Both the position numbers and the translations under genes were made by a program. Shown one piece after another: positions 1 to 40,455 of a stretch of DNA of 64,000 nt. The notes beneath the pieces were generated by a model. The model made no database searches. It saw only the letters and a list, made by a program, of their open reading frames with translations, and had not been told where the DNA came from. The first letter of the stretch is position 1, and each line of letters starts with the position of its first letter. The stretch spans positions 77,810,001 through 77,874,000 of the forward strand of contig NC_045732.1 in the NCBI RefSeq assembly GCF_009834535.1, given 5' to 3'. The DNA is from Camelus ferus. Lineage: Eukaryota.

Positions 1-420
1 TCGGTCGCCTGGAGGCGGGTCTAGTCACGACTCGAGCTTAGTCATTGGCGGATCTAGCCAGAAGGGGTGGGCAGGAAGGCGGTGCTCCGTGGCTTCCGGT
101 GGGTGCGCTGAAGGGAGGTGAGGAGATAGACGCGGGGGCGGTCCGGGCGGGGCACGACGGGGCGGGGCACGACGCGGCAGGACGACGCCCGGGCCTGCTC
201 GTCAGCGCCCTGGGGCTTTGGACTCCGCCCTCGGCTCCTCTGAGTCCTGGGCCGGGCCAGAGTCCCGGTTCCCCGAGACCCCGGGGGTCTACGCTCTCTC
301 CGGGGGAGAGGCGGAAGAGAAGCCTCCTCAGAGTCCAGGCCCCGGGAGACCTGAGGGCGCCCCTCCCGCCGCTCCTGGCAGGACTCCCACCACTGTCCCG
401 AGGGTGTCTGGCCCTCTAGG
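1..420. promoter_or_regulatory. CpG-rich promoter-like segment with no linked gene in the window
   Basis: High CpG density, tandem GGGCGGGGCACGACG GC-box repeats (~146-175), ETS-like CTTCCGG (~93-99) and ATTGG (~44-48). Confidence 0.35.
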
Positions 421-918
421 TGGCCGGGGATTGTGTATTGGGGTCCCCAGGGGCCTGGTGAGTGGGGAGGGAGGGCAGATGGCAAAGGGCACGGTCTCCG
501 GCTCCCCCCCCCCCCCCCCCCGCAAGTCCTTGCCTCTGAGGGCGGCCTTACTCCGCACTTCTTGGAGCTTCCATCCTCCCAGAGCTCAGAATGTAGCACT
601 CTCTCCGACCCACACACACCCTTGCCCGGCCCACTGTGTTCCAGCGCCCCTGAGTGTGACTGGGACGGGCTCTGTGAAGCATGGATCCTCCCTCCTCCAC
701 GCACACATACACACACAAGCTAGTATCCAGGGAGAGGTGGGCAGAGCTGGGGCCAGTACCCGGAGCCATGGTATCTGCCAGAGGTGTCTGTCCAGGCTTC
801 TGGAGGTAGGGTCGTGAGGTCGGCAAGAAGTAACAAAGTCTTCCCCATGTCACTTGACAGGTGTGGCTTGCTGGGAGGGAATCCTGCCCAAGCACGCCTG
901 TTCTCCAGGACAACCTGT
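223..918 (+). repeat. Diverged outer inverted duplication, left copy (partner ~39806-40455)
   Basis: Collinear reverse-complement matches: 477-488 vs 40178-40189 (12/12), 521-549 vs 40125-40153 (22/29), 771-788 vs 39902-39919 (16/18), 848-865 vs 39836-39853 (16/18), 901-918 vs 39806-39823 (17/18). Confidence 0.85.
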
Positions 919-1096
919 GGTTGCAGCCATCAGCCATCAGTGCCTGCCTCTCTGCCTGCCTGCCTCTCACCTGGGGAGGTCAAGGTGAACCCCGCAGAGA
1001 AAGCTCGTGGCTTCTCGAGAAGTGGGCACGATCAGGAACCATCCGTCCTGGTGGTTCTCACGCTGGGAGGTGCGTGGGAACACCTGGAAGGCTTCT

Positions 1097-1247
1097 NNNN
1101 NNNNNNNNNNNNNNNNNNNNNNNNNNNNNNNNNNNNNNNNNNNNNNNNNNNNNNNNNNNNNNNNNNNNNNNNNNNNNNNNNNNNNNNNNNNNNNNNNNNN
1201 NNNNNNNNNNNNNNNNNNNNNNNNNNNNNNNNNNNNNNNNNNNNNNN
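1097..1247. other. Assembly gap (151 N)
   Basis: Run of N. Other gaps: 15115-15245, 18372-18599, 23879-24025, 31404-31607, 35377-35476, 43081-43242, 50889-51036, 62830-63054. Confidence 1.
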
Positions 1248-4200
1248 CTGCTCTAGAGGCCTAGAGTGCTGTGTGTGTGCCCCCTGCCCTACCCAGGGCT
1301 GGCTCCTTTGCAGGGTCCCTGTGGGCCTGGGAAGTGCCAGGAGGGTGCTAGCTCTTGCGAGATCAGGAGTTTCCCATTGAGTAATGGTCGCCCTTCCCTG
1401 CCTGGGGGCACTGCAGGATGCCATCCTCAGTCCAGGCAAGATAAGGTGTCATGTTTGTACACGTGCTCAGCAGGTTCCAGACTGGGGCTGATAACATCTG
1501 GACAAGGAGGAGAGGGGGCGGAGATCAGATTTGTGTCTGGGCGTGGGGATGGAAAGGACTCTGACGAGGCAGAGGAGAAAGACCCGAATGCCGAGCTCGG
1601 GGATGGGAAAGGAACCTGGGCCCTGAGACCGAGACCAAGCCGACTGGGGGGAGCGTGGAGACCAGAAAGGGGCTTGTCTGCCCAGGAAGTGCCCTGACAG
1701 TTGTCTGGGCTGTGGGTGTGGCCCGCCCTCCAGCTGGGGGGAAGCTGTCGCCTTTCCTGCCAAAGGTTCCTCACCTATAGGGTCTCCCAGCTCCTGGGTG
1801 ATGCTGCCCGGACAGACCTGCTCAACACCCAACACCACCACCCACCGCTTTGGCCAGTCTTTGCGGTGGATAGTCTTTGTTCGGCTCCAGGATGGCCTGC
1901 CGTCTAGTTGGAGCGGCAGAGGAAATGCAGTGCCAGTCACCCGCCACCATTTGTGCCCGGAATGAGCAGCTCTGGGACCTCGGCAGCCCAGCATGCTCTG
2001 CCTGTGGACTCAGGTGGCGCAGGAGCCTTTGGCTTTCATTTCCCGCCTTCCCCTCTTCCACCCCCTTTTCCTGTTGGGTCATTGGCTTTTCCAACTGGTC
2101 CCTGACTGCTTCAAGCTCTCTCTACTCTAATGATAGGAGCCCTGAGTCACATCTCGCTACTGTTTTTTCCCCGCTTTGTCACTTGTCTCTTGACTTTGTG
2201 GTTTGGTCGGGCAGATGATTTCAGTTTTTATGTCATCAGACTTTCCAGGCTTTTCCTAATGGCTTCTGGGGTTTCTCATCGGTTTGTTTGCTTCAGACTG
2301 ACTTAGAGTGGCCTCCATTTAAAATCATCGTGTAGTAGTCACCTATTGCTGGGTAAGAAATTACCCCAAATGTGGTACCTTAACGCAGCTAGCACTTTGT
2401 GGTCTCCCAAGTGTCTGAAAATCAGGATCCTAGAAGGCTTGGCTGAGGGATTCCTGCTCGGGGTCTCTCACAGGCTGCAGTCCAGGCGTCAGTTGGGGCC
2501 ACGGCCATTGGGTCTGCCTGGGGGTGGAGGTGGGGGGCTCTGCTTTCCAAGATCGCTCACTTGCCTGTGGCAGGAGCCTCAGGCCTCCCCACCAGGCCTC
2601 TCCATAGGGCTGCTCAGGGCAGGGCTTCCCCAGAGCCAGCGATCTGAGAGAGACAGAGCAGCCCCAAGATCGGAGCTGCAATGTTTTTTCAAATAACTTC
2701 ATCTCTAAGGCACACTCCCTCCCCTCTGCTGTAGTGTTATGGGTCACACAGGTAAACCCAGGAACAACGCAGGACAGGATGATACCCACTAGGGCGTAAG
2801 TGGTTCCTGTTCATGGCGAATGAGAAGGCTCCGAGGAGTGTCCTTGCTGCTGAACCTGGGTCGGGGACTCCTGGTCCCACACAGGCTCCTCAGGAATGTG
2901 TCCTTTGTGTAAGCTGGGGTGGTGAGTTCCAGCCCCGGGGCCAGGACAGACAGGGCCTGTGTTTGCAAGGGCAGAGGGTGGCTCTTCATCTTTAAATGGT
3001 TGCAAGCAAAACACACAGAAGGCCAGAGAAAGAAGGAATATGTGACAGAGCCCCAGTGTGACCCACAGTGCCCACGGTGTGTGCCTTCTGCCCTCTGCCC
3101 TCTGCGGAGGAGTGCAGCACTGCTGGCAGCCCCAGCTGGTTGTGCAGCCCTGGACACACGGGCAGGAAGCTCTTTGTCATCACAGCAGCACATTCACTGC
3201 CAGGGCCGTGTAAGTCCCCACCCAGGCCTGGGCCCCAGGGTGCTCTCCCACCTCCAAGGTCCCCACTCAGTGGTTCAGTCCTGCCCCCACCCCACTCCCT
3301 CTCCTTCCCAGTGTGTGTGTGGCGGTGGCGGGGGCAGCTACCTTGCCTGAGGCTGGGGTGACCTCTCTCTGCACATGGGTGCAGCGCCTCCCCTCTCTTC
3401 CCCTCCCCTCCCACCCTCCACCTCGCAGCTGTGATCTGGGTTGGGACAGGGAGGAGAGAACTGGGGCCACGCTGTGCAGGTGCAGGCTGACAAGCCCCTT
3501 TTCTTCAGTGACCGTGTCAGGTAGCCCCGTACTGGGCTCTGGTGGCTCAGTGGTGGCAGGCGCCAGCCTGAGATGGCAGCCGAGTGTCCAGTTGGTCCCA
3601 GGAGGGAGCTCCCCCTGTGGCTGAAGGGGCCTGGAGATGTGCCTGCCCCATCCTTCTTGGCTGGCACTCAGACACGACTTCCCGATGACACGCTTGGTGG
3701 CTCTGCATTTGACACACAGGTTCTGTGGGCGGTGAGTGCTTTTCCTGTTGGCTCTCACTGCTGGGCAACGCCGGGTCCCTTGGCGACAGCTCCCAGCAGC
3801 ATCCAAGGCCGCCATGCACTTCTGGAACCCAGGGATGGTGGGTTTCTGGAGAGCTGGGCTCTCTGTCCCCCAGGAGCAGAGACCGAGGCCATGCCTGCTG
3901 GGCCTCACCTCGGGGCTTGTGGTCGTGGCTCCTGGGCACGCCCTTTGGCCAGGGTGTTAGGCCTCATGGCCCTGGGGCTCCCCTGGAGACGCTCAGGCCC
4001 GGTGCAGCCCCACACTCCTGGGCCGTCTGACTGTCCCGCTGACCCGTGACTGAGTAAGAGCCACGTTCCGGTCCCTCCAGTTCCTGGGCAGGAGGAATAA
4101 GCAGGAGGGCCCGGCTTCCCTGCAGTCTTCCCTCTGAGGCAGCCTGCCACAGGGGCCCTGGGGACTGGAGGGGGACTGGGTCTTCCCTCACCCAGCTGCA

Positions 4201-7200
4201 CAGGCGCCCTTGCCTGGGGGAGCTCCTCCTAGTGGCCCGCTCTGTGGGTGGTGTGGGTGGGCACAGTCAGGGCAGCAGCCGGACCCCGTCCCCACCCAGC
4301 CTCCCGCCACCGCCAGGGCTGGTCCTTGGCCCTCACCCTCCCCGCGGGAGGGCCTGGGTGCCTTTCCCATTGAACACAGGACGTCTGTGCCTGGCCCGTC
4401 CTCACAGGTGTGCGGACCAAGGGCAGTCTCCCAACCCCACCCATCATTCAGTGGTTTCCTCAGCCCTGCTGCCCTGGCTGAGGCCTCGCTGGGCTCGTGG
4501 GGACCTTCCAGATACCCGTGGTAGAGGTGGACGAGGCCGGCCCGACCTCTGAGCAGCACCGCGTGGCCCTGCCTGCCGGGTAGCATCCTCCCTGGAGATG
4601 CCTGTGGCCTGAGGACGAGGCTGGTGTGGGAGCTGGCAGCAGCCGGGCCCTGGAGCGGGATGAGACACCCCGGGCAGCAGAGCGCCAGCACACAAACACG
4701 CGGTCCGCGTGGCCCGCGCCCAGCACTCCGCGTGCCTGCTGACCCTGACCTAGCGGCCACCTCCTTCCTGGGGGGTGGCTTCTTCTGGCTCCATCGGGGT
4801 TCCGGGATGGGGGTGGCCTCCCTCGAGCACCCAGCCCTGTGCCTTGGAGTTGGGCCAGGTCGCCCATGCTGGGGGGCCTTGCAGGAACCCCAGGTGTCTT
4901 CAGACTAATGTTGCCCTTGTTGAAATGCTGAGGCTCCCTCCCTGTCAGATGGGTGGCGGCTCCATCCTGAGTGGCTGCTGCTCCCCTTCCCCACCTGGGT
5001 GCCTCCCATCCTCCTGGAGGAACAGGCAGCAGGGAGGGTCAGGTGCAGAGGTGTGGCCAGAGCAGGGGTCGGGGCTGCTGTGGTTGGGGCAGTCAGCTCC
5101 GCCTTCCCCCTGTCCTGCCTGGCTTGGACTCCGACCAGACAGGACCTGCGGGACAGAGGTGGAGGCTGCTCCTGACCTGGGCGACCCGCCATCCCCTCCC
5201 CAGACTTAATAGGTGAGGTGGGGTTGCCTGGGGAGGGCATGTGGCTGGGTCCTCTCCCCGGCTCCTGGCATGTGTTGGCGAGCAGGGCTCGGGCGTGGGG
5301 CCTGTTGGGGCCGGGCCACCACCCCTGCTGGCTCTGGATGGGTGGCCCAGCCTGGACACCCTGTGTGTGAGCCCGGCTGAGGGCCTGGGCCTTGTGATTC
5401 CCTGTGTCCTCCTAGCAGTCCGGGTGTCCTCTGGGGGAGTTGCTCAGTGGGGCCGGGGCCCAGGCCATTCTCCCCCAGCAGGATGGGGTCCTGGTGCTCC
5501 TTTTCCTGGTGCCATCTGCCTGTCCTCCCCTAAAACCCCTCGCAGGGATGGTGCCCCAGTCTTGTTTCCTCCTGTCCCCTGCCTAGGCGGGCCTCAGGCT
5601 CAGGTCCGGTCTATCCTGTAGCCTCTGTCCTCTGGGTCCTGTTTCCCCCCAGGTTGGCATCTTTCCCCCCTTGCCGACCCATGGGCCTCATGGTTGCCTG
5701 GGCGTGATGTGGCATCTGGGAGGGGACAGGGACTCCTGGTTAGCTGGGCTCAGCTCTGGGGCCATTCTCCCACGAGGGTCCCCACCAGGCAGGGGCTTGG
5801 AAAGGATGGGAGGCGGGACTGTCTCCTCTTGGCAGACTGGCCCAGGGAGGGGGCAGGAGGCTCTGGGCGATTCATGGAAAGGAGGTGTGCCATGTGGGTG
5901 GCAGGTGGGCCGAGAGGAGGAGGGGGTGCCTGGGGGGGGAACCTCTATCCCCCCAGTGGTGCTAGACCTCTCTGTGCCTGGCTCTGCCTCCTCTCCAGCT
6001 GAGCAGCTTCTAGAAGCCTCCAGTGTGCCTGCCTCGCTCCCGTCTCAGCCCAGCAGGCTCCACAGAGAAGTGGTGGTTCAGGGGGCGGGGCCTGCCCTGG
6101 GAGGGGGAGGGTGGAGTCTCCAGGGACTGGCCCTTTGTGCAACAAACCAGCCTAGGAGAGTAGTAGTGCCATTGTCCTCTCCATTAGGCCCTTGGGGCCT
6201 GGAGTGGTTCATCCTCATAGAGCCAGAGGCTGTGCACCCCTTGGCCTGTCCTCTTGGATGGATGCCTCTGTAGTGCTGGCACCAGCTCAGTAGCCACCCT
6301 CTCTAGTTAAAGCAGCTGTCCCAACACAGAGTGGTGGTCAAGGCAGAGGGGGCCCTAGGCCTGCCCAGTATTGTCTGCCCCCTCCCCTGGATCTGAGGGT
6401 CTGGGGCAGAGGTCGAGGGGCTGGATTAGGAGCTAGGCTTCCTGGCTCCACCTGTGTCCCGCCCACAGCGTCCTCTTCTCTGCACTCCACCAGGGATGCA
6501 CTCAGCTTCTCGTGCAGAGGCCCAAGGGACTTGCTCCATTGCAAGGGCTGGCTGCTTGGGCTCCTCCCTGCCTGACAGCCGCTGCAACCCCCAGCCCGTG
6601 GCACCCCCACTGCAGGGGGCCCCTCAGAGCTCCTGTGGGAGGTAGTCTCAGAGTCCTGGAAAGCACTAGGTCGAGACCTCGAAATCTGGGGTCCCTCAGG
6701 GGCTCACGGAGCCCTCAAAAGCCTTTGGGTTGGGGTGCTCAGAGCAGTAGGGGGCACTTAGTGCCCTTATGGAGATCTGGAACCCTGGGAAGTGGGGCCC
6801 AGCCTGAAGGGGAGTCCTGGAGGGGGGCCAGAGCCTTTGGGAGCTATCAGAACTCTGGGAGGGGGTGGCTCAGCCCTGGGGCAGGAGGCTTGAAGCCCCT
6901 CAGGAGCCTGCAGTCACCTTCCCTTGGTGGGTGGTGATCAATGCATGTGGTTGCCCTTGGGGAATAAATGAAGAAAGGTGGAGACTGTCTCCTGGGTGGT
7001 AACTCTTTCCTTTCTTTCCTCTCTCAAGACACCACAATGGTTGCCAAGCACACCTAGCCTCCCCTTTCCCTGCTTTCCCTGCAACAGATGGAGGACTGAA
7101 GCCCGCAGAGGGCATTCCATCCAGAGGCCTCGGTCTCTCCCCTTCCTTGTGATGCCTCAAGCCCAGCTCTCCTTCCTCCTGTGCTGTCCCTTCTCTCTGC

Positions 7201-7299
7201 CTCAGCTACTCCCAAGTGTCAGCACATAAGCCTTACCATTTCTCTAGGCTTCACCTGACTCTTCCCAGACTCCTTGGGGCTCCAGCAGTCCCCGGTAGT

Positions 7300-7420
7300 G
7301 AGTGATTGTTGGGGACCATTCTCACAGGCTCAGTCCCTGCTCGTAACATACTTGATTTGGGATCAGTTGCTGAAACAAGATGTCTCACTGTGCCCCTCTG
7401 TAGTCCCCATGCACTGGCAA
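7300..7420. mobile_element. Degenerate MIR SINE fragment
   Basis: Resembles the MIR core by eye (ctcagtccctgctcgtaacatacttg...ctctgtagtccccatg); boundaries approximate. Confidence 0.4.
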
Positions 7421-8660
7421 CCTGATTGCTTGTTCTGCTCCTCCCCCAATGCAGGCTCACTGATCTTACCATCAGGCCCTGTTGTCACCAACGAGGAGGC
7501 AGCATCTCTGCCCATGCCCACCACCCACCATGAATCATCCAAGCCTCAGCTCTTGCACTGGGATGACAAGGGGCCTGGGGACTCCACGCCAGTTGGCTGG
7601 GTGCTGGGAGAGCCAGGTGGGAGTGGCTTGCAGAGGCTGTGGGAGTGGTGAGAAAATCTGAAGCAACTAAGTTCTTTCATTCTTTTCTGTATATATATGT
7701 ATCTTTTCTGTATATTTTAAATGCATAAAAAGGTGTTACTTTTAGGAAAACACATACATACCAAAAAAAAAGTGCAGGGACAGACTAGGGTGCAGCAAAA
7801 AAATGAGCAGGAGTGTTGGGTGGGAGGGTTCCAGCCCCTGCCCTGGCTGGAGCTCACCATGTGGCCCTGGACAGCCAAGTGCCTGCAAAGACTCAGGAGC
7901 CCACAGTGCACGTGCAGGTGAGAGGCCAGCCCTGCCATGTCCTATCTACCATCTGTAGCCAGGAGCCACCAGAGGTGAGGAACTGGTGTCAGGGCCCCAC
8001 CCAACGGGGAAGCCCTGGTGGAGCCAGCCTCTCTGCTTTTCAGCCCCCTGCTGGCGGTGTAGAGCCAGAGTGCACGGCCTCACATGGCGTCCTACACTGG
8101 GTTACCTCAGCACCTGCCGTTAAAGTTGTACCTAAACTTTGAAAATTAGGAAATACCCGTGGCAGAAAACCAGGAGGTAATTGAGAATAGCCAGGTGAGG
8201 GAATGGTTAACCCGAAGGTGATGGGGCATTTCCGGGTATTGGGAGCCTTCCCCTGTCATTAAACAATCAGCTTTCCAATAGAAATGGCCCACCAAGCAGA
8301 ACCCTTCCCATCTCCCTGCCCTGGGACACTGAGGTGGGCGTCTGCTTTTCCCAGTTAGGACATCCACAACTGACGTCGTCCATGCCGCCTTGCCTGCATT
8401 TCCGGGTGGGCTGTCCGTGGGCTGTAATTCTTAAGTAGTTACAAGAGCTTTGGTAACAAATCAGGAAATGGACCCTACAAGCAAAACACATATGTACCCA
8501 CGGGTAGCATGTGATCCCTACCCTTAACCGAAAAGAAAAAGGAAGAACAAAGCCAGATGTCAACTCTGGAGACCCAAGCCCCAGAGGCCCTGAGCAGGGG
8601 GCAGCCCAACCCCTCCCCACATTAAAGGGAAGAGCCCACATGTTAAAAATAAACGGTCTT

Positions 8661-8666
8661 TTTATT
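8661..8666 (-). terminator. EMD: EMD polyadenylation signal AATAAA
   Basis: TTTATT on + about 375 nt beyond the EMD stop codon. Confidence 0.75.
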
Positions 8667-9039
8667 GTGCGTTCATGAAAACAAAGTCAGGGTGGCCTTT
8701 GGTTAATCCCCCCCAATGAAGTGACAACAAATCATGCAATGACAACCACCATGTTCTCTCCAGGAGAAGGGTCTTGCCCTCCTAGGCCCTTAAGGGTCAG
8801 AGGCAAGCAGGGCCAGGAGGCTCCAGAGGAAGGCCCGCCCAGGCCCACCATGCTGCAGAGGGTCTGGTCCTGCTGCCTCCCTGGCAGGACAAGGCAGGAG
8901 AAGCAAACATTGCCCCTTTCCCAGGACCCCCAAGCTAGAACACAGAAAAGCCCCAACCCCCCTCCCCCAGCAAACACTGCTAAGGCAGTCAGCCAGGACT
9001 TCCAAGAGCAGCTGGCCCCAAAACCACGAAGCCAGACCC

Positions 9040-10858
9040 TCAGGGGTCTGCCCAGAAGGGGTTGCCATCCTCAGCCTGCATGGAGTAGTAAACAAAGAGC
9101 AGGAAGGCAGCGAAGACCAGGAACAGGAGCATCTGACCCCAGAGTGGGACCTGGCGCTCCTGACCCAGACCTGCCCCAGGGGCCTGCTTTTCGGGCCGGA
9201 TGGCACGGCGGGTGAGCCACGAAGGTGGGGGAGATGAAGATGAGGACACTGGAGAGGTAGAGGAGGAGGTGGGGTAATAGGACAGGCCCAGGGAGCTTCT
9301 GGAGACGTTGGAAACGGGGCGGTAGTGTGCGATGCTCTGGTAGGCACTGTCACGACCATACACGGGGCGCTCCCTGAGGCAAAGAGGAGAGTGGATAGGT
9401 CAGGAGGGCCTGAGCCCAGAACCAGCCCCAATCCCTGGCCCTCCCTACTACTCACCTATCCTTGCCTTCTTCTTCGGAAGAGAAAAGACTGTCATCGCGA
9501 ACCTACAGAAGTGAATCAGGGTAAAAAGATACTGCCTGGTGAGGTCAGCGTGGTCCTGTCACATCCCTTAATCCAAACTTCCCTGTCCAGCCTACTCTGA
9601 ATACTGCTTAAAAGCCGGGGCCTCGCCACCCTCCAGAAGCCTTCTCAGTTCCCGGCCCTATCTGTGGGGCCTTGCCACTTGCTCAGTGACTGTCCTGACT
9701 GCCTGCACCCTACTTTCTGCCCCAGGATTCTCAGAAAGAGCTCAAACCCAGATCCCAGACCAGAGTGTAGGGCATGTCCCAGGTCCTTTAGTCAGACAGT
9801 TGTGACAGCCCCGCAAAGAAAGGTCCTGACTAGGCAGGCAACTGCTGAGCCCACCTCTCCCTGGAGGCTTAGGAGCCACCATTTGCACCCAGTGCCCCCC
9901 CAGTGTATCCAAACCCAGCGATGACCCCCTCAGGTTGTACCCAAGTATAGGGGGTCCAATGGCCAGCTCACCTGGTGGTGGAAGGTGTCAGCATCTGAGA
10001 GTGAAGCGGAGGGCTGGCGGAAGCCCTTGGATGTGCCTACAGACTCAGGCTCTCCGTAAGTCCTGGTGCTCAAGTAACTCTCCTCGTAGTAGTCATCGTT
10101 GTAGCCTTGGGAAGGAGGGGCAGCGGTAGCAGAAGGGGCAGCGGTGTCCCCCGCCTGGCGCGATGGCCCTAATCTGGCGCCCACTTGGGGGCCTGTGACA
10201 TAATTTCTCCCCTCCAAGGCCACTGTAGGACCATGGGGGTTGAGGTGTCAGGTTCTTCCTGACACCGGGATCCCTGAAGGAGTGGAACGAGGGTGCCAGG
10301 GTGCCCACCCCACCCTGGCCTTACCCTTGCTCTGGTAAAGTAAAGCGTCCTCTTTCTTGGGCAGATCGTACATATCCGAGTCCATGGACGCCGCATCTAA
10401 GTCTGAATGGGGGAGGGGCCAGGACCATTTGCTCCAGGCTCCCCTCCCTCTTCCCCGTGCCCCTCCCAACCAGCGGCCCCACCACACCCGCGAGACTCCT
10501 TCCTCCCCGTCGCCCAAAGCCTGTCCCCGCAGGCGGCCAAGTGGAGCTCTGCGGCGGGGGCCTTACCCGAGAACCGATAGGAGAAAGGGGATGCGGACGA
10601 GTTCGGGGGCGAGAGCCTCCGCCTCTGGGTCTCAAACTCGAAGATTTTCTTTTCGTAGAGCTTGCGCGTGGAACCTGGCCAGACAGGGGGCGCAAGGCCG
10701 TCAGGGGCGCGGGCTGAGAGCCCGGGGCAGCGCGGGGAGGGGGCCCGCCCGCAGCCCGCCGCCCGCCGCCGCGTACCCACGACAGGCCCGTGCGGGATGT
10801 TGTACTGGCGCAGCACGGCGGCTAGCTCGGCGTCCGACAGGCCCGCGTAGTCGTCCAT
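9040..10858 (-). CDS. EMD: Emerin (LEM-domain inner nuclear membrane protein), 6 exons, 260 aa
   Basis: Coding exons 10858-10777, 10674-10567, 10402-10325, 10105-9972, 9502-9456, 9373-9040, all GT-AG; 783 nt in total. LEM domain [38 protein letters not shown]; C-terminal TM segment [24 protein letters not shown]; ends GNPFWADP*. Confidence 0.99.
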
Positions 10859-10974: not shown

Positions 10975-11499
10975 CGTCACCCCTGCGTCACGCTCGCGTC
11001 ACAGCCGCGGTCTCTGCGGGCCGCGCGCGCTGCGCGGGGCGGAGACAGGCCCGGAGAACCGCCCGCGCAGACTAGTCGAGCCACGGGAACGGGCCGGGCG
11101 GGGCTGGCCAGCCCAGACGTCACGGACGAACGGGATTGGCTGGAGGCGAAAGACGGGCGTAGAGTGCGTCAGCGGCAAAGCTGCGCAGACCAGTCCGGCC
11201 GTGGGAGCGGGCGGGGCTGCGCGCCTGGGAGAAGGGGCGGTGTCGGCGGGCCAAGCGTCGTCACACGCTAGCGCGTTCGGGCTAGACACGAGGAAGGGCG
11301 GGGCCTGCGCTCAAGGGGGAGGAGCGTAGACCCGTGGGGACGTGGGAGAGGGGCGGGGCCGGCGAGCCGAGGCGTCACCCGCTGGGACATTCGGGTGAGA
11401 AGTGAGGAAGTGAGGAGGGGCGGGGCCCGTAGCAGTGAAACCGGCATTAACTGGCTAGGACGTGGGAGCACTGGTCGTGCTCGCCCTCTGTGAGTGACG
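10975..11499 (-). promoter_or_regulatory. EMD: EMD CpG-island promoter with a cluster of CRE half-sites
   Basis: CGTCA(C) at 10975, 10986, 10997, 11118, 11167, 11259, 11373 and GTGACG at 11494; GC boxes; TATA-less. Confidence 0.75.
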
Positions 11500-13670: not shown

Positions 13671-13805
13671 TTTCTTTCTTCCTTTTTTTTTGGGGGGGGT
13701 AATTAGGTTTATTTATCTATTCTAATACAGGTACTGGGGATTGAACCCAGGACCTTGTGCATGCTAGGCATGCACTCTACCACCAAGCTATACCCTCCCC
13801 TCTCA
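13671..13805 (-). mobile_element. Camelid-type tRNA-derived SINE (Vic-1-like) with 18-bp target-site duplication
   Basis: Minus-strand head GGGGAGGGTATAGCTTGGTGG..., B-box GGTTCAATCC and A-tail; TSD AGCTGTTAATGTTTTCTT at 13653-13670 and 13806-13823. Confidence 0.9.
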
Positions 13806-30300: not shown

Positions 30301-33300
30301 CCAAAATCCCTTCTGACCACTTTTAACATCCCGGCCCAATAGCCCCTTCAAGGTCAAGGTGCTGCCTACGCATGATGCCAGCAAGGTAAAGGCCAGCGGC
30401 CCTGGGCTCAACACCACTGGTGTGCCTGCCAGCCTGCCTGTGGAGTTCACCATTGATGCGAAGGATGCAGGGGAGGGTCTGCTGGCTGTCCAGATCACGG
30501 TGAGCTGACCACATGGGTGGCCACCTGGCCCTGCTGTTTTGCAGCTCTGGCCACATGGAAGGCGAGGAAGGGGAAGGTCCCAGGCTGGAGTGGTGGGTGG
30601 TGTGGGGCATGCAGCCTGGGGCAGATGGCCCAATCCGGCTCTCTGATCTGCCTTGGGAGCTTTGTGCAGGGGCAGGTCCCCTGCCTCTGGGATGGTAATG
30701 ACAGACAGGGGCTTCCCCACACACGCACTTGCTCACTTCTAACTGAGCTCGTTACGTTACTGAAGCCCTTATAGTGCCTCAACTTGCCCACCTGGAACAT
30801 TCTCTCGGGCCAGGTATGAGGCTAGGCTGGTGAGATCTTCTGGGGGAGTTCCTCCTAATGCTGGGCAGACCCTGCGGTGGAGGGTGGGAGCTGAGAGGTG
30901 CTCATGGGGATAAAGGAGAATGGGTGCCAAGTTTTCTGGCCTTGCCTGTTGTCACATGGGGGAGCACTGGGCATTTGAGGGCTTCTCTTCTGGGCCCTGC
31001 CCATGGGGGAGTAAGGGACAGTGTAGGATGCAGGCAGCCGTTTTGGGCCAAGGTGGTTGAGTGGCTCGCAGGTGTCCTTGCAGCAGCAGTGCTTGACCCT
31101 TGATGCTTTGAGAGGGCCTGAGGTAATCCCAGGCCTGACTGGGCTTGGGCCAACTGCCTCCCCTGGGCTCTGCCACACAGGACCCCGAGGGCAAGCCCAA
31201 GAAGACGCACATCCAAGACAACCATGACGGCACGTACACGGTGGCCTACGTGCCAGACGTGACGGGCCGCTACACCATCCTCATCAAGTATGGTGGCGAT
31301 GAGATCCCCTTCTCCCCATACCGCGTCCGGGCTGTGCCCACTGGGGATGCCAGCAAGTGCACCGTCACAGGTGAGCCTGCCCGCCAGCGGCCACGGCGCT
31401 CAGNNNNNNNNNNNNNNNNNNNNNNNNNNNNNNNNNNNNNNNNNNNNNNNNNNNNNNNNNNNNNNNNNNNNNNNNNNNNNNNNNNNNNNNNNNNNNNNNN
31501 NNNNNNNNNNNNNNNNNNNNNNNNNNNNNNNNNNNNNNNNNNNNNNNNNNNNNNNNNNNNNNNNNNNNNNNNNNNNNNNNNNNNNNNNNNNNNNNNNNNN
31601 NNNNNNNTCCTCTTCCATGCTGATTCCCAGGACAGTTCCAGCTGCAGCTCTTGGCAGGGACAGAGGGGGGAACTGGAGGGTTAGGGCCCAGGGAGGCCTC
31701 CGGAGCTGAGCATGAGCACTCCAGCCCTCCCCTTCTCTGGGCCTCCGTTTCCCCATCTGAGAAGTCGGGTTGCAGCTGAGAGCTTTGGGGTGTGGTGCAT
31801 CCTGAGAGGCACCCCACTGGGGGCTCTGGGGTCTGGGGATCTGGGCACCCCCGGGAAGTCCCAGGGGCAGGCAGCAAGCCCTTTCTTTTCACTTCCTCCT
31901 TCTGTGTTAAGGGCTCTCACATGGGGTCTCCCTCAAGCCATGGGAGTCCCCGGCCCTGGCCGGATCCACAGACCCCCACCCCCACCTCCCAGAGGCCTCT
32001 GCATCCCGGGCCGGGGGAGGCGCAGACTGCATGAGTGGGCGGGGCTGGCTAGTAGTGCGGCAGCACCGGCGTCGACTGCTTGGGCGGCCAGCATGGCGGG
32101 GCCCGGCCCAGCCTCAGAGCCCCAAAGTGCACTCGGTGGCCCACCCACCCTCCCCACATCCTTCCCTCCCCCTACTCCCTCAGCAGTGACGTTATTCAGA
32201 TGGTCCCCAACTAGGCATGGAGATCCTCCTGCTCAGGCATGGGAGGGAGAGCCAGCCCAGGCCAAGGGCACCTATGAGAGGCAGTAACTACACGGGAGCC
32301 TCGGAAGGCTGCAGGCCTGGAGCTTGGGCGAGGCGGCCAGGGATAAAGTTAGAGGGTGGCTGGGGTTTCGTGGCAGGGGTTGAGGGACTCTGTAGAGCAG
32401 GCCTTGGATTTGAGATGACAGGCATGTGTGCCTAGGGCAGGGGGACAGGGCCTTGGGGACCATGGGCAGGGTCAAGACTTAGCTGACAGAGTGGTCTCAG
32501 TTTACCTGGCCACTGTGTCCAGAATGGAGGCAGAGAGCCCAGCTGGGGAGCTGAAGTCACTTTTGGACCAGTTGGAGGGGTGGCTTGGTCTAGGCCAGTG
32601 GTGGGGGACTTGAGAGGGGAACCAAATTGGGGGGTGTACTTTGAGGATAGAGCAGCTGAGACATGCTGATGGGCTGGGCACTGGGCAGGGGAAGTGGGGA
32701 GTCCAGGCTAACTGTGAGGCCAGAAGCCCGAGTCACTAGCTAGACCGTGGGTCCAGGTTCCAAGCAGGGAGAAAATGTGTGGCTGCATGTGAGGTGAGGC
32801 CTCCCCGGGCAGGGTGGGCAGTAATGGGCCAGGTCTAGAGCTCAGGAGAGCTGCGGAAGGCCAGCATGGAGCTCAGCAGAGTGAGAGCCCTTGGCAGAGA
32901 TAAGAGCTCAGCGGCAGGCTGGCTGGGGGTTGGGGGGTCCTTGAACTTAGCCCCTGAGTCGGTTTCGGTGTTCCCTGCTGCTTCCCTAGCAGGGGCTGGG
33001 CTACAGAAAGCACTTTCGCTGCCAGGCCTCACAGCCCACAGCCCCCCAAGCCTCCACGGCTGAGCCAAGATCATAACGTCACTGTCCCCCACTTTCCTCG
33101 GGCACTCTGGGGCCCTGGAGGCTGCTCAGCTGCTCCGCTCTTGCAACCTAGCAGCCGTGGCTCTGGCTTGGGCGTCCTGTCCCCTTCCCCCTGGGTGCTG
33201 CCGCTGCCACTGCCTGCTGCGCTGTGCTGCCTGGGTGCTAACCCTGCTGCCTACCTGCTTCCCTGCTCCCAGCTCCTGCCTGCAACGGGCCATGCCCAGC

Positions 33301-35376
33301 CGTCCCTTTCTGCAAGCCTCCAAGCGAGAGTTCTCAGTTGTCAGGAAACTCCAATTGCACCTTCAGGCCGGGGTGGGGCGGGAGGCGAGTGTCACATTCT
33401 CCCACGCTGCAGCAGGACTCCGCCTCACTGCGTCTGCACACAGCACTGGGGGCCAGGCCGCAGGGGCGAAGGCAGCTGTGGACCCAGCTGGAGCACTGGC
33501 ATTGGTCAGTGTGGTCCATGGCGCCAGCTGAGGCCAAGTTGGCAGGGGAGGTGGCGGCCAATGCTGGTGCCCTGACAGCATGTGGCCCTCCAGGCCCTTC
33601 CTTCCTCTTAAGACACCTGAGTGCCACCCGTCAGGCCTTCCCCACGTAGGGGATTTCCCCAAGATAGCACTGCCTGGCTTGAGGTGGCTCAGGGGAACCT
33701 TTCCTGCCTTCTGAGAAATCACTCACCATCCCAGCTTGGAGGGGGTGGGGGCAGGAGGCCTGGCTATGCTTGGTGGCAGTAAGAGGCCTGGGCGGGTGGC
33801 AAGTGGACAGGAGCAGCCCGAGCACCAAGCTCATGCACCGGCCCCCACTTTGGGGACCCACCCTGCCCCACCAGGTGCTGGCATCGGCCCCACCATCCAG
33901 ATTGGAGAGGAGACAGTGATCACTGTGGACACCAAGGCGGCGGGCAAAGGCAAGGTGACCTGCACCGTGTGCACACCCGACGGCTCTGAGGTGGACGTGG
34001 ATGTGGTAGAGAATGAGGACGGCACCTTCGACATCTTCTATACGGCTCCCCAGCCTGGCAAATATGTCATCTGCGTGCGCTTTGGTGGCGAACACGTGCC
34101 CAACAGCCCCTTCCAAGTGACGGTCAGGAGGGGCCAGGGGTGAGGGGTCTGGGCAGGGCCTGGCCTGCCCCCTGCCCTGGGGCTCACCTTGACCAGAGTC
34201 TCTAGCTCTTGTACGTTGCTCTGCAGGCTCTGGCCGGAGATCAGCCCATGGCACAGACCCCACTGCGGCCTCAGCAGCTGGCCCCACCATACACCTATGC
34301 CCAGGGTGGCCAACAGACCTGGGTATGGCCTGGCCCACCTCTTCCTAGCTTACCTAGCCCTAGGGGACACTTGGGGACTGGCCAGCTGGGTGTCCCGTGT
34401 GGCCCTCTTCTGCTGCCTTTGTGGAGGGACCCCATATCCTCCCACTTGGGACTCCCCTCCCTTCAATAGCTCCCGACCCAGGCCCTTTGTGTCCACTGCA
34501 GGCTCCAGAAAGACCCTTGGTGGGTGTCAATGGGCTGGATGTGACCAGCCTGAGGCCCTTCGACCTTGTCATCCCCTTCACCATCAAGAAGGGCGAGATC
34601 ACCGGTGAGCAGGGCGGGAAGGAGCTCTAGGGAGGCCAGGGTGTGCCGACGGGCTGCCCTGACCCCAACCCCACTGCCCTGCAGGGGAGGTACGGATGCC
34701 CTCGGGCAAAGTGGCGCAGCCGGCTATCACCGACAACAAAGATGGCACTGTGACTGTGCGCTACGCGCCCAGCGAGGCTGGCCTGCATGAGATGGACATC
34801 CGCTACGATAACATGCACATCCCAGGTGCGTCACGCAGCCAGCCGTCACCACCTCACAGGGGCCTGGGGCTGGGGGAAGGACTTGGGGACAACCCAAGGC
34901 CCCCATTCCACATAGCCCCCTTCCTGCCTTAGGAAGCCCCCTACAGTTCTACGTGGATTATGTCAACTGCGGCCACGTCACAGCCTACGGGCCTGGCCTT
35001 ACCCATGGGGTGGTGAACAAGCCTGCTGTTTTCACGGTCAACACCAAGGATGCAGGAGAGGGTGAGCGTTGGCTCTAGTTTTAACCTGCCTGTGTGTTGC
35101 GAGATGCCATCATCTGATAGAGAACTGTATGCTGGAGACACTCCCCAAAGGGCATTCCCCACCCTGCCACCTGGGCCTCTCCTTGCCTGTTGGGGCTTCT
35201 CATTGGTGCAGTGTCTCCGGTCACAGTTCCCACCCTCACCCACAACTCTCTCCAGGGGGCTTGTCCCTGGCCATTGAGGGCCCATCCAAAGCAGAAATCA
35301 GCTGTACTGACAACCAGGACGGGACGTGCAGCGTCTCCTACCTGCCTGTGCTGCCTGGTGACTACAGCATCCTGGT
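18308..35376 (+). CDS. FLNA: Filamin-A, coding exons 2-36 (3'-partial; exons 37-48 not in the assembled sequence)
   Basis: Exon 2 acceptor 18193, ATG 18308 ([14 protein letters not shown]). Exons: 18308-18680, 21753-22001, 22090-22187, 22309-22456, 22868-22986, 23079-23156, 23247-23409, 23499-23699, 24244-24381, 24466-24589, 24706-24842, 24944-25137, 25305-25418, 25507-25650, 26344-26467, 26551-26711, 26798-26888, 26969-27138, 27410-27527, 27627-27889, 28117-28714, 28799-28972, 29054-29216, 29294-29454, 29550-29720, 30129-30252, 30343-30499, 31181-31370, (24-nt exon 30 expected in gap), 33875-34122, 34227-34322, 34502-34604, 34685-34825, 34933-35061, 35256-gap. All GT-AG and in frame. CH domains ([28 protein letters not shown]) and filamin Ig repeats (..GPG.., SPF) present. 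Confidence 0.99.
19900..19909. promoter_or_regulatory. CArG box (SRF site) in FLNA intron 2
   Basis: CCATATAAGG; AP-1 TGAGTCA at 19757-19763 nearby. Confidence 0.65.
25760..26260 (-). mobile_element. Old L1 (L1M-type) 3' fragment in FLNA intron 15
   Basis: Typical antisense L1M text (ttgttgatggacatttgggattttc...gtgaacagtgccgctgtgaacgttcaagtacaagtgtttgtgtgg); boundaries approximate. Confidence 0.75.
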
Positions 35377-35476
35377 NNNNNNNNNNNNNNNNNNNNNNNN
35401 NNNNNNNNNNNNNNNNNNNNNNNNNNNNNNNNNNNNNNNNNNNNNNNNNNNNNNNNNNNNNNNNNNNNNNNNNNNN
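35377..35476. other. 100-N assembly gap of unknown size hiding the FLNA 3' end
   Basis: Exactly 100 N starting mid-exon 36; unrelated L1-derived sequence resumes afterwards. Confidence 0.95.
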
Positions 35477-35857
35477 GATCAGCCACGGTTGGTTCAAGCG
35501 TTCACCCACTGAAGAACGTATTGCTTGTTCCCACTTTTAGGCTTCTACAAAGGAATCTGCTGAGAACATTCGTGTACAGGTTTCCCGTCGTCGTTACGTT
35601 TCCATTTCTTTGGCATAAACGGCCACCAGTGCAATTGCTGGGTCCTACGGAGGTGGATGTGTAGCTTTAAAAGAAACTGCCAAACTGCCTTCCACTGGGG
35701 CTGTATCATTTTCCATGACCACCCTCGCATATTGTTTAAGCACATAATTGAACATTGTTACAAAACATTATTTTAAGCAAGAGTGTTAATAGTTTTGTTT
35801 CTCTCTTCTAAACTGTATTCTTCTATGCAATCACCAACACAGTTATTCACACCGTTT

Positions 35858-35891
<34 letters not shown>

Positions 35892-36460
35892 GGACACTTG
35901 ATGGTGATTTTCTTTTAATTAGCAACAATATATCTTGGAAATTCTTCCATGTCAGGACACAAACGTCCAGCTCATTTCTTCTCTCTGGCCACATGGTATC
36001 TGATAGAATACGTGTCCTATAATTTACCTAATGGATCCCCAGTTGAGGTACCTGTACCTTTCTTCTCCTTCTTTTTGCTATTCATGTTAATGCTGCAACT
36101 CCCAACTCTGAGCTTGCGTCAATCTCCCTCTAGGATAATTCCTCTAAGTGGAACTGCCAGGTCAAAACCTGGGGGCATTTAAACTTTTAATAGACACTAT
36201 GTAATTGCTTCCCCCCAAGACCCTACTTGGTCATACACTAGGGCTGTTAGTCCTTTGTTCCGTATGTTGTAAATTCTTTCCCTCAGTCTGTCTCTTGTCT
36301 TGAGAGACTAGGCTTGCTGGTCTGGGCTGTCAAGAAGCTAGACAGACATTTTTATATGACCAAATTTATTGAATTCTCAATTGGTGTTTTCTGGGTTATG
36401 TATCTTGGGCACAAAGCCCTCCTCCCAAGTGTGAGGAGAGTGATGAGACTCGGGGCAGAA
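35477..36460 (-). mobile_element. Old L1M fragments with an (AC)14 microsatellite at 35861-35888
   Basis: Antisense L1M-like text (ctgccaaactgccttccactggggctgtatcattttcc; taggataattcctctaagtggaactgcc); boundaries approximate. Confidence 0.7.
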
Positions 36461-36492
36461 TTTCTGAGTCCCCATAGCCAATTCCTTGTCTG

Positions 36493-36618
36493 TTTTTTTT
36501 TTTTTGGGGGGGGGGCTAATTATTTTTTAAGTATTTTTTTTTTAAATGGAGGTACTGGGGAATGAACCCAGAACGTCATGCACGCTAAGCATGCACTCTT
36601 CCACCGAGCTATACCCCA
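36493..36618 (-). mobile_element. Vic-1-like SINE
   Basis: ggaggtactggggaatgaacccag...gagctatacccc preceded by a poly-T tail. Confidence 0.85.
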
Positions 36619-37429
36619 CTCACCGTCAATTCCTTGCGGACCCAGGCTGGTAGGGTCGGCCTGCGGCCAAATCACTCTGTGTGTGTTGGAGGAGCGGGGT
36701 GCTGCTACCTTGGCTGGGACTGGGAGCAGTGCCTCTCAGACATCCAGCCCCTGCCTTCCAGGGATGCCAGTCCAGTTTGGGAGAAAGACAAGGAATGTGT
36801 AACGAGAAGAGCCTAGTTATATTATTTCAGTGCAGGGACACGAGGGAGATCCATGAGGAAACAGCCTTGAAAACGGTGGGGGGAGGGGCTGGGTTTCCGA
36901 GGCGCTCGGAGTTAATGGGCCTCAGAAGGTGAGACAGCAGAACCGAGAATCCACCTAAAACCAGTGCTCTCGAAGGGTCACCTGCACGGTGGAAAGGAAG
37001 AACAGGCATATGAAAAGAAGTGGGTCCATCCCAGCCTGGGTCTGAGTGAGCAGGAGGAGAACCCCGCCCCCACGTCATCCTTAAGCAGGGGCTACCTCCT
37101 GGGGCCCGCCGCGGGCAGAAAGGCTTCAGCGAGCCAACCGCTGGCTGCCAGAGGAACTGCCCCCCCCCCCACTCCCCGCGCCCCCATTGTGCTGCTACTG
37201 CTGGGCTCCTGGGAGCAAACCCTGCCCGGGAGAGGACTCCTCACCCCAGGCGTCCCGTTCAGGACTCCCGGAGGCCCAGCTGAAGGCGGGTCCGCAATCT
37301 CTAACTGAAGCCACCGCCTGCCTTCACGGAAAATCAGCAGGTCTGTCAAAGAGAGGGCTGGCCCTGTCAACGACCCGCTCCCCAGGCCTTAACTGTCAGA
37401 GGCCAGATGACATCATTTTTGGCAATGGC

Positions 37430-37620
37430 TGCGAGGGTTTGCTATGTGCCTGGGCTCAGCCATCCCACCCTCTCCACAGCACTACAAGGTTGGTAGGATG
37501 CTGTCCTCACTCTCTGGATGAGGAAATGAGGACCACATGACACACAAGGGTTAGGTAGCTTGTTCTGAATCGCTAGCTAGCAAGTGGCTGAGGCCAGGTG
37601 TGGATCGAGGACTCTGGGCT
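37430..37620. mobile_element. MIR SINE fragment
   Basis: ctctctggatgaggaaatgagg...aagggttaggtagcttg...agcaagtggctgaggccagg resembles the MIR core. Confidence 0.65.
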
Positions 37621-37899
37621 CTAAGCCTGACCACCCCCCCCCCCTTTGTGGGCTACGCTCTACAGCCTGGCTCCCTTGTCACTGGGAGATTCCCGGGGCC
37701 TGCCGGGGGTACATCAGCTTGTCCTGAAGGCGGCAGAGGTGAGCCCAGGTGAATATCCCCCAGGCCTTGGGTCAGCACGTAAGGAAGGGAGGAGGGTGAG
37801 AAAGAGAAACACCTCCTACTCTTGTGCTTAATCGGGGACTTTGAAACACCGACTGACATCACCTTTGCATTCTCCTGAGATCAGAGAGCAGTTCTCATG

Positions 37900-38135
37900 G
37901 ATATTTACAAATCGTTTGCATTAGTGATATAAAGCTACTCTGCAGTAGCCCCCAGAGACACAAAAAGATACAGAAGAGGGAATCACAAAGATAAGAGTAA
38001 AGTGAAAAGATTTGAAAAAGAAAAAGCATTTTAGAAGTTAAAAAAAGAAAGCACAGTCATGGAATAAAAACCTCAAGAAATTAATTAAACCACAAGTAGA
38101 TGCCACTGAAGAAGGAGTTAGTGACCTGGAAGACG
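37900..38135 (+). mobile_element. L1 ORF1-region fragment (degenerate)
   Basis: A-rich L1M-like text ending gaaggagttagtgacctggaaga. Confidence 0.5.
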
Positions 38136-38779
38136 GTGCCTCAGAAATCACCTCCTGCCCTGGTCCCCCTGGTAGCTGATGATGTTGCTCCCTCCTTCCC
38201 TGAGAGATTGCAGCAGCCCCTCCTCAGAGATCCGGGGCTCTGGATGTTCAACGCCCCTCATGCTGGCTTCTAGCCTTCCAGTGACATCAACCCCTTCCCT
38301 TCTGCCCCTTGCTCCAGGGGTGGCAGCTTCTTCCTGTACTGTCCCTGTTCCTTCAGCCCTCCGCTCCCTGAGTGACCAAGTGGGGCTCGAGGCACCCATG
38401 ACCTGCAGGGGCCTCACAGTTCGCCAGGGTCTCACCTGCAGTTGACTGGGATGAAGAGTCCACTGCAGCAAGTACCTGGGGAGCTGGAGTGGCTGCCGCC
38501 CTGGACGGTCAGGAAGGCCACGATGGCTATCAGGACTGCAGTATGGGATGACTCTTGAGTGTACCTGGGAGTGTACAGAGGAACAGATGACAAGGTCAGA
38601 TCCCTTACAAGTCACACTATGACAGCCAGAGAACTTCCATGCAGCCCTACAAAACTCTCGTACTCCCTGTACCTGCAGGGCTGAAGGTGCTGGAAAGGAA
38701 ACACAGCATTTCATTGTGAGGGTTACAGAATCCCAAGGCCCGTTGAATTCCCAGCCTCTCCACATTTCTCATATGAAAG

Positions 38780-39560
38780 GTAGAGCAGTGGTTGGAGGAC
38801 TGGGACCCTGAAACCTGGAACTGGGACAGCTGGTTGGCTGCAGTTGAAGCTGACAATTGGGAAGACCCCAGTCCCACTGAGCCTGTTTTGCCAGACGAAG
38901 TAGCCTGCCCTCCCTCCCTCGAGGACTGTGTCATTACCTCACCTGGGGCAGATGCCTTGCAAAGGGAGACCCGTCGTCCTCCAGACTCTCTGCATCCACA
39001 CCCTGTTGCCATTAGACCCATAACTGGAATCCAATCAATCACAGCTTGCTCCAGGGCGTAAAGTCTGACCAAAGAGGACATAGTTTCTACATGAATACAT
39101 ATTTTCCAGACTTGACTGAAATCTACCAAATCAACCCTATTTGAACATTTGTGGTTGTAGTTTTTCAGGGTTTCCAACTGAGTAGGTGAGCTCGGACACT
39201 CCATGTAGTGGAGTATTTGACAGAGGTGTATTTACTAGAATTTCCAGGTGGAAAGTGTTAGCACATGGAACTCGTGAATAGTTGCGCACTTCACATGGTT
39301 GGTTGTCTGAATCTTCGACCCGCTGTTGACTTGTATTTCATTGGTTTGGATGTCAGAAGTGCCGTGGCATGATGTGGAGGACAGAACCCAAAGGCTCAGC
39401 AAGAGAAGAATTTTGGAGTAGATTCATCATATTGTACCTGAACACCCTACCCTCCAACTGTGATCCAGGGATAGGTCCAGTGCTGGTCTTTCAAAGAGGC
39501 ATTGAGAGAGCTGTTTAAGCAGTAACACTAGCATCCTTGAAAATCTCTGAAAAGATCATA
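38780..39560 (+). mobile_element. Degenerate ERVL/MaLR internal (gag-like) fragment
   Basis: Motifs gggaccctgaaacctggaactgggac, ccattagacccataactgg, gtggaggacagaacccaaaggctcag and ctagcatccttgaa resemble the ERVL/MaLR gag consensus as recalled; no intact ORF. Confidence 0.65.
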
Positions 39561-39805
39561 GTGCTTCTAGGAAGGAAATAGTTGGGCAGCCTGCTACAGT
39601 GCTTCTTGATGTATGTAACTCTAAATGCTCTAGGTCTGTGACCCAATTACCTGACTTCAGTGCCCCAGTGGAGAGTCACAGCTCCTTACCCAGTTTTCAG
39701 GCCCAGAGCCCCCCAATAGAAGGGGAGGCTCCCTGGGAAGGGAATTGGAGGAGTGTACACCACAAATCTTCTGGAACCTTCCTAAAGGAACCATTCACTA
39801 AAGTG

Positions 39806-40455
39806 ACAGGTCGTCCTGGAGAAGAACAGGTGTATCACACTTGCCAAGTGACAATGGAAGTCTTCATTACCTTCCTACTGTCCCCATCTCCAGAAGCATT
39901 TGACACCTCTGCCAGACACTTAGATCCCTTGTGACATGAGCACTAACTGTACACTTCTCTGTATAATATTCTTGGCGGCGGGGGGAAGGATTCGTGGTTT
40001 AACTCAAAGCATATCAGAGGCATACTCAGGCTCTGTAATATAGTGGGCGGGGAAAGAACTGTGCGTGAGGGGGCGTTCCACGTTCTGGTCCTTGGGATGG
40101 TGGAAGCCCCCAGGAGCAGGGATCAAGGCAGTTCTTAGCGGCCAGGACTGGCGCGCGGCCGGAGGAGTGACAGTGGTCCTTTGCCATCTAGGTCGGGTTA
40201 CTACCCTTCTTTTCCCCTTCTCCAAGTCACCCTGGGGAGTATAACCTCTTTTCTCTGCCTGGTCAGGGGGGCTCAACGGTGCTCATGGAGTCCCCCGGAC
40301 CTGGATTTTGGTCACAGCTTCTCTAAGGCGACTTCAAGCGGGAGGCCGCAGACCGCCTGGGGCTGGCGCAGGCCACGCCCCCGGCCTCCAGGGATCGGGA
40401 CTAGGCATAGGGCTCAAAGGGAAGTAGACTCAGGACTCTCTGGTTAGGGCGGGAG
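39806..40455 (-). repeat. Diverged outer inverted duplication, right copy (partner ~223-918)
   Basis: See left copy. Coordinate sums of the matched blocks drift smoothly (40666 to 40724), so the homology is collinear and inverted. Confidence 0.85.

Follow-up and report, generated by a model that had tools for sequence, protein, structure and literature searches.

The stretch of the Camelus ferus genome analysed here (64,000 nucleotides of contig NC_045732.1, assembly GCF_009834535.1; hereafter the window) contains the emerin gene EMD and the filamin gene FLNA, a pair that provides the classic mammalian example of recurrent inversion mediated by repeats. At its start, and again just upstream of RPL10, the window carries two inverted copies of a module of about 0.67 kb, designated A and B. 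As judged by sequence comparison, these are ancient paralogues that are specific to this locus and form part of the inverted-repeat system of FLNA-EMD. On balance, we favour an account in which the module was duplicated in ancient times, copy B has been retired, and copy A persists within a younger, live arm, so that the arms of the system turn over. The FLNA-EMD system itself is already known; what is new is a decayed partner copy for which a comparator exists in another mammalian order. The two copies are placed as follows.

242 to 919, reverse strand (its reverse complement is collinear with B): arm A, the module of about 0.67 kb at the far end of the EMD 3' flank, delimited by local alignment, shuffles and profiles.
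39,807 to 40,478, forward strand: arm B, a diverged copy of the module that precedes the RPL10 promoter by about 0.5 kb, delimited by profile matches.

Local alignment of window positions 1-1096 with the reverse complement of 39,300-41,000 yields a core in which 477-918 pairs with 40,189-39,806 through 271 matches and 101 mismatches (73% of the aligned columns, 60% when gaps are counted). Its score of 81.5 compares with 12.1 ± 1.8 (maximum 19.5) in 100 dinucleotide shuffles; with blastn, the match has an E-value of 2e-19 and is the sole one of that stretch on either strand of the 64-kb window. The outer 230 bp is marginal when judged from the camel sequence alone, where 246-346 versus 40,392-40,293 is not significant (score 20 versus a null of 14.7 ± 2.3), but it emerges clearly with profiles. 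A profile of B orthologues from pig, pangolin and gray whale, with the camel left out, matches window 919-261 (E-value 1.6e-61), and a profile of A orthologues from right whale, Myotis and pangolin, likewise without camel, matches 39,840-40,478 (E-value 2e-38). The all-species profile matches 39,807-40,238 on the B side. An earlier note, made from the letters of the window, had proposed inverted homology between the window start and a stretch upstream of RPL10. This proposal is borne out by an alignment far above the shuffles and by both profiles, and the extents given there (223 to about 900, and about 39,800 to 40,455) lie close to the measured ones. Its suggested continuation to about 1420 and 39,650 is not upheld, since scores there fall to shuffle level and the profile matches end at 919-930 and 39,797-39,840. 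In the outward direction, neither alignment nor profiles detected significant homology in 1-242 or in the RPL10 promoter. The longest exact run common to the camel A and B copies is 12 bp, and the pair is therefore unable to act as a substrate for homologous recombination. No Rfam family matches within the arms, and their identity between camel and whale (68-89% per 100 bp) has no outlier indicative of a conserved element.

With 60-73% identity, A and B are as alike as old interspersed repeats can be, and one might thus consider them to be separate insertions of one repeat family. Across 271 kb (the window and the first ten retrieved loci, L001-L010), nothing but orthologues of A and B matched the profiles, and the later loci L011-L014 likewise gave no third copy; the comparison set as a whole comprised, in addition to the window, 14 loci of nine other species, a locus-scale rather than genome-wide sample, and neither Dfam nor RepeatMasker was run on it. 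Genuine interspersed repeats recur many times within the window, several of them being tRNA-derived short interspersed elements (SINEs). Furthermore, the homology of about 0.67 kb has the same two edges across several orders, both copies occupy orthologous positions in these orders, and they have been homogenised with each other in the anteater Tamandua. Two insertions of a repeat family, the outcome that the earlier note had itself set against its proposal, were not found in the window and the loci searched, and we consider this explanation highly improbable.

The relatives were reached through stop-free frames crossing two exons of EMD and two of DNASE1L1, which led to mammalian emerins and DNASE1L1 proteins, and the corresponding genes were retrieved with 10-kb flanks. 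FLNA was not used for this purpose; the filamin representative (P0122) shares only about 73% identity with its camel counterpart. In right whale, Myotis and pangolin, the entire EMD 3' flank is collinear with the window from about position 7,750 down to 3; collinearity is patchier in the elephant and reaches only to about 2,016 in the slow loris. Orthologues of A are present in right whale, Myotis, pangolin, elephant and Tamandua (in the latter by profile only), and orthologues of B sit a short way upstream of RPL10 in pig, pangolin and gray whale; those of slow loris and Tamandua are partial. In each fetched species showing the respective side, A is contiguous with the EMD 3' flank and B with the RPL10 side. 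The likeness between A and B across species is at least that of the camel's own pair; gray whale B and camel A, for instance, are 68% identical (E-value 5.5e-43). In an unrooted tree of nine core sequences, A and B are split with a support of 100/100, and the species order is kept inside each group. Because the A and B clades are separate, no exchange has taken place between them since before bats, pangolins and cetartiodactyls split. This branch and the 12-bp limit on shared runs in the camel substantiate the view, already put forward in the earlier note, that gene conversion between the copies has stopped.

Some additional observations concern the surroundings of the two copies in these species. 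A 418-residue gene annotated over A in the right whale has no Pfam match, is not called in bat or pangolin, and is probably spurious. In the gray whale (locus L009, reverse complement, 1-3431), homology to camel, pig and pangolin ends at the equivalent of window 39,252, at a SINE; the counterpart of 35.5-39 kb is not found within 3.4 kb of B, and a 632-residue gene without Pfam matches is annotated there. Window 1-450, just outside arm A, is rich in CpG, is 71-89% identical per 100 bp to right whale, and belongs to a spacer with orthologues in pangolin, bat, elephant and Tamandua. Nothing else in the window matches it, except that the corresponding whale and pangolin sequences weakly match the GC-rich stretch 15,036-15,114.

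A live version of the repeat is found in Tamandua, whose X chromosome has EMD (minus strand), FLNA (plus) and RPL10 (plus) in the same order as the camel scaffold. Its arms (L013 17,019-18,705 versus the reverse complement of L010 3,620-4,919) are inverted, lie 52.7 kb apart and enclose EMD and FLNA. They are 81-100% identical; a central portion of about 700 bp reaches 98-100%, and the longest stretch without any difference spans 169 bp. Their outer edge corresponds to about window 285 and is hence within about 40 bp of the edge of camel A and B (242-261). The camel arm sequence is thus orthologous to the arms of another eutherian, both through the A orthologue and through the position of B. 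In the tree, the A and B copies of Tamandua pair with each other (100/100) beside elephant A, while the Laurasiatherian A and B clades remain separate. This pattern would be the one expected of a single old duplication that was homogenised in the anteater and abandoned early on the way to the camel. Independent duplications are compatible with the tree, because it is unrooted; the common edge argues against them. The earlier note had regarded A and B as marking the ancestral outer boundary of the duplication. Their outer edge does coincide with that of the live Tamandua repeat, but as the boundary of one duplication the proposal is wrong or unproven.

Contig data from camels bear on the present state of the arms. 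Logan contigs of four camel runs (X15, X2, X9 and X10), representing three coded organisms, were placed on the window. Copy number was derived from assembler word depth, which is not itself a copy number, and depth ratios served to infer the sexes of the animals. The segments and gaps that matter here are these.

1 to 1,096, no strand assigned: segment holding A; it is as deeply covered as 37.1-39.0 kb and about twice as deeply as the fork branches, and it extends 1091 bp to the left of the window.
35,477 to 39,035, forward strand: non-coding segment designated F, collinear in pangolin and elephant and probably part of a near-identical arm present in two copies, with its outer edge at 39,035.
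39,036 to 39,806, forward strand: spacer of single-copy depth (X2 contig depth 6.9 versus 12 before the fork).
1,097 to 1,247, no strand assigned: gap of N letters about 180 bp beyond the inner end of arm A, the probable inner edge of the two-copy segment.
35,377 to 35,476, no strand assigned: join of 100 N whose left and right sides are discontinuous (the filamin chain ends at it, and none resumes).

Contigs that run from 37,141 (or 36,549) to 39,035 have word depths of 71, 12, 34 and 33 in the four runs, the doubled depth of F having been measured for about 36.5-39.0 kb only. At 39,035 the assembly graph forks into the path present in the window (an X2 contig over 39,016-40,488 with 0 differences and a depth of 6.9) and an unlike path, represented by 1.9-kb contigs with depths of 37, 17 and 17. 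The contigs over A have depths of 61-64 (X15), 11-16 (X2), 35-36 (X9) and 36 (X10), and in all four runs they end at about 1138, inside the N gap, and 1090-1092 bp to the left of window position 1. B is covered by the X2 contig only, at about half the depth of its neighbour; in three of the four runs no contig is listed over 39,057-40,700. The simplest reading of these data suggests that A, a spacer of about 1 kb and 35,477-39,035 form one segment of about 6 kb that exists in two near-identical copies, and that 39,036-40,478 is single-copy. The segment of A, spacer and F is probably the arm of today's camel and would be the counterpart of the live arms of other placentals. Its existence in two copies would explain why the draft has gaps exactly at 1097-1247 and 35,377-35,476. 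The 30-letter sequences at the loose ends of the contig forks have no match in the window or in the loci. We also observed that window position 574 is T, while the covering contigs of all four runs have C, a difference that reflects either an assembly error or a private variant.

The window has nine N gaps, of which eight span 131-228 N; the join at 35,377-35,476 alone consists of exactly 100 N. Neither arm contains one. The genes enclosed by, or next to, the two copies are placed as follows.

9,040 to 10,858, reverse strand: EMD coding region, within the A/B bracket; exons 3-6 match Camelus ferus emerin isoform X2 at 100% identity.
18,602 to 35,377, forward strand: FLNA, residues about 99-1908 only, as a tblastn chain of the filamin representative (2627 residues).
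41,120 to 43,468, forward strand: RPL10 coding exons, on the B side and outside the bracket, seen as open frames with RPL10 peptide stretches.
42,897 to 43,031: SNORA70, in an RPL10 intron just ahead of the gap at 43,081-43,242.

Like the 100-N join, the gap at 18,372-18,599 has discontinuous sides: the chain of filamin matches begins with residue 99 at 18,602, right after it, and the 5' coding exon is absent from the window. The chain stops with residue 1908 of 2627 at 35,377, where the 100-N gap begins, and tblastn with the same representative detected no filamin exon beyond residue 1908, including in 35,477-39,250. What is lost at the join hence amounts to about 719 codons (about 27% of the coding sequence), the 3' untranslated region and anything beyond. 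As the scaffold is written, A and B are inverted and enclose both FLNA and EMD, which is the bracketing of the whole EMD-FLNA block claimed in the earlier note. This bracketing is insecure because the right-hand side hangs on an unsized 100-N join that lacks those FLNA codons, so that the order and orientation of this side are unsecured. The camel window is a draft with collapsed repeat arms, and the gene order around the EMD-FLNA block should not be read from it.

With no filamin exon in it, 35,477-39,250 is to be regarded as ordinary intergenic DNA. We had considered this stretch to be the 3' end of FLNA, and had taken the corresponding DNA that adjoins RPL10 in pig, pangolin and slow loris, or the spacer of A in elephant, for decayed copies of that end; both ideas are ruled out by the same finding, and a one-step staggered-break model built on them was dropped. 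Within the EMD flank (1-8,900), neither tblastx nor blastn detected any trace of 33-39.8 kb.

The arrangement of these segments differs between species. In 42 kb of pangolin sequence, assembled from two overlapping loci, the order is the 5' part of FLNA, EMD, the EMD flank, A, a spacer of about 0.7 kb, a segment like F (collinear with window 35,477-36,893 and then from 38,408 onward), B and RPL10. EMD consequently adjoins the RPL10 side, and A and B are in direct orientation 4.8 kb apart, both on that side. A, the spacer of about 0.7 kb and F are contiguous both in pangolin and in elephant, where the parts collinear with F are 20,340-21,687 and 22,080 onward (pangolin) and L014 19,109-21,784 (elephant). 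In the slow loris, EMD is likewise on the RPL10 side, 22 kb upstream, and the 37-39 kb segment adjoins RPL10. Both gene orders thus occur among the fetched species: the neighbour of RPL10 is EMD in pangolin and slow loris, and FLNA in Tamandua and in the camel scaffold. The points at which the camel scaffold and the pangolin switch are the outer side of the spacer of A and about 35.4 kb, at the 100-N join. They are not at A and B, and the idea that these arms carry the orientation switch is accordingly not supported. One observation in a second assembly of Manis pentadactyla should be mentioned here: locus L007 (22.8 kb fetched) is 99.7% identical to the other pangolin assembly, and over 14,836-22,789 it is annotated with a 2846-residue model containing CH, filamin and ribosomal L16 domains, that is, a fused FLNA-RPL10. 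Either the annotation has produced an artefact here, or the model hints at the opposite orientation in that animal.

Taken in the sense that we favour, A and B would be two copies of a module of about 0.67 kb derived from the DNA between EMD and RPL10. The module would have been duplicated at about the time when placental mammals began to radiate, within an inverted-repeat system that flips FLNA-EMD. In the line leading to camel, whale, pig, bat and pangolin, exchange between the copies ended before these orders split; in Tamandua, it would have continued. B would then be a retired arm of the first generation, while A would persist in a younger, larger arm of about 6 kb (A, the spacer of about 1 kb and 35,477-39,035) that is present twice in near-identical form in camels, its second copy being either collapsed in the draft or outside the window. 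The arms of the FLNA-EMD system would, in this manner, be replaced over time. Each pair of arms may be the by-product of an inversion through staggered breaks; alternatively, each pair may have arisen by duplication followed by recombination, and a later overlapping inversion could turn a pair direct, as it is in pangolin. Several points weigh against this account. Logan word depth, with inferred sexes, is the sole source of the doubled copy number of A and F, and depth points to a second copy without showing its place or orientation. The contig ends at 1138 and at 1091 bp left of the window could be coverage holes instead of repeat edges. As to Tamandua, its distal arm could be a hybrid generated by a deletion between a distal copy of A and B, and the unrooted topology alone cannot separate a single origin with later homogenisation in Xenarthra from independent duplications.

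The view closest to that of the earlier note is that A and B represent the outer ends, now decayed, of the sole ancestral duplication, that there is no live arm, and that the camel block is fixed one way. It draws on the decay of the pair, which cannot recombine and has undergone no exchange since before the Scrotifera radiation, on an outer edge equal to that of the live arm in Tamandua, and on the finding that the window contains no other long inverted pair enclosing the whole block. The last point says little, because any live arm would in part be collapsed or fall beyond the window. Against this view stand the fork at 39,035 and the doubled depth over A and about 36.5-39.0 kb in four runs, which point to a near-identical second copy, and also the unsized gap without about 719 FLNA codons at the right-hand join of the block. 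We therefore regard this view as unlikely. Another explanation holds that A and B are a direct, local duplication in the ancestral EMD-RPL10 DNA that involved no inversion, their inverted appearance in the camel being due to a later flip or to a mis-oriented scaffold. The pangolin, where both copies lie on the same side in direct orientation with spacer and F between them, would agree with this, as would the unsized camel join and the location of the camel-pangolin difference away from A and B. The pangolin state fits an inverted origin as well, because a later inversion that carries one member along, as described for nested inversions, makes an inverted pair direct; moreover, the corresponding positions in Tamandua are occupied by inverted, near-identical arms around EMD and FLNA whose outer edge is that of A and B. 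A direct duplication as the origin appears improbable to us for these reasons.

The interpretation originally given to this locus is right in that A and B are relics of the FLNA-EMD system between which conversion ended long ago. The notion that both arms are fossils is not supported by contig depth, since A lies in a probable two-copy segment together with 35,477-39,035 and only B looks retired. The further suggestion that the block is locked in this lineage is unsupported in view of a probable live arm whose partner would lie outside the window; any ability of the camel block to flip depends on the younger arm and not on A and B.

Comparison with known systems places these findings in context. 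In humans, the arms flanking FLNA-EMD (palindrome P24, inversion HsInv0389) are 11.3 kb long and more than 99% identical. Inverted repeats flank FLNA-EMD in placental mammals, with recurrent inversion, according to Small et al. 1997 and Caceres et al. 2007 as represented in papers citing them. The camel resembles the human situation in the locus and, as the scaffold is written, in the genes enclosed and in having inverted copies on the EMD-flank and RPL10 sides, and in Tamandua the arms at the positions of A and B are near-identical. In contrast to the human arms, camel A and B measure only 0.67 kb, are 60-73% identical without a run longer than 12 bp, have seen no arm-to-arm conversion since before the Scrotifera radiation, and include a copy, B, that lies outside the segment that looks two-copy. 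The isochromatid (staggered-break) model, in which inverted duplications are left at the ends of an inversion (Ranz et al. 2007, PMC1885836), has also been applied to the human sex chromosomes (PMC2817401). Each camel duplicate joins the ancestral flank on one side only (A the EMD flank, B RPL10), as this model expects, and the direct orientation of the pair in pangolin is what another inversion overlapping the first would produce; the A/B data are, however, explained equally well by plain duplication and subsequent recombination. Palindromes of sex chromosomes are kept alike through arm-to-arm gene conversion (Jackson et al. 2021, PMC8327919). The arms of Tamandua conform to this behaviour, and so probably does the camel segment of A, spacer and F, whose identity is deduced from collapsed contigs. 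Camel A versus B, on the other hand, represents a copy that dropped out of conversion and diverged at about the neutral rate.

Beyond the arms, the locus presents a number of features in their own right. A young inverted repeat is situated between EMD and FLNA exon 2 (11,479-12,260 and 17,035-17,829; 97.2% over 795 columns). The same pair exists in right whale (L001 2152-2965 and 8617-9367) and in pangolin, where its own copies are 99.4% identical; kept alike within each species, this inner repeat therefore evolves in concert. The EMD exon 1-2 stretch aligns to emerin isoform X2 across an in-frame intron; identity to camel emerin is 100% wherever the exons give a clean alignment, which marks the window as a camel X-linked scaffold. 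A Camelus dromedarius protein annotated as emerin-like (P0061) and encoded on a different contig of 80.5 Mb is about 90% identical to the window EMD in most exons, and its gene may be a retrocopy or a paralogue. The FLNA gene model is truncated at both ends in the window. One RPL10 coding exon (roughly residues 111-164, judged from the flanking exons) was not seen and is probably within the gap at 43,081-43,242; DNASE1L1 follows on the minus strand past RPL10. Four tRNA-like Rfam matches (13,726-13,797, 36,547-36,618, 61,335-61,406 and 63,323-63,394) fall within a repeated family of about 150 bp and are tRNA-derived SINEs, and a second old repeat family has copies at 26,039-26,256, 35,501-35,723, 48,642-48,865 and 50,674-50,870.

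A recent review of X-chromosomal palindromes remarks that the arms at this locus are not orthologous in all species, a statement compatible with a single origin as well as with multiple ones. Arm replacement would fit this remark. A short module with the same outer edge that is live in the anteater and survives as a fossil in camel, whale, pig and pangolin is directly relevant to the choice between a single and multiple origins and suggests arm turnover. We tentatively raise the possibility, which we would not yet call probable, that the module is the footprint of the founding rearrangement of FLNA-EMD, an ancestral core that would be live in Xenarthra and retired in Laurasiatheria. If this is true, the inverted repeats of mammals would share one origin more than 100 million years ago, and their arms would have been replaced in successive generations, each perhaps arising from a staggered-break inversion.

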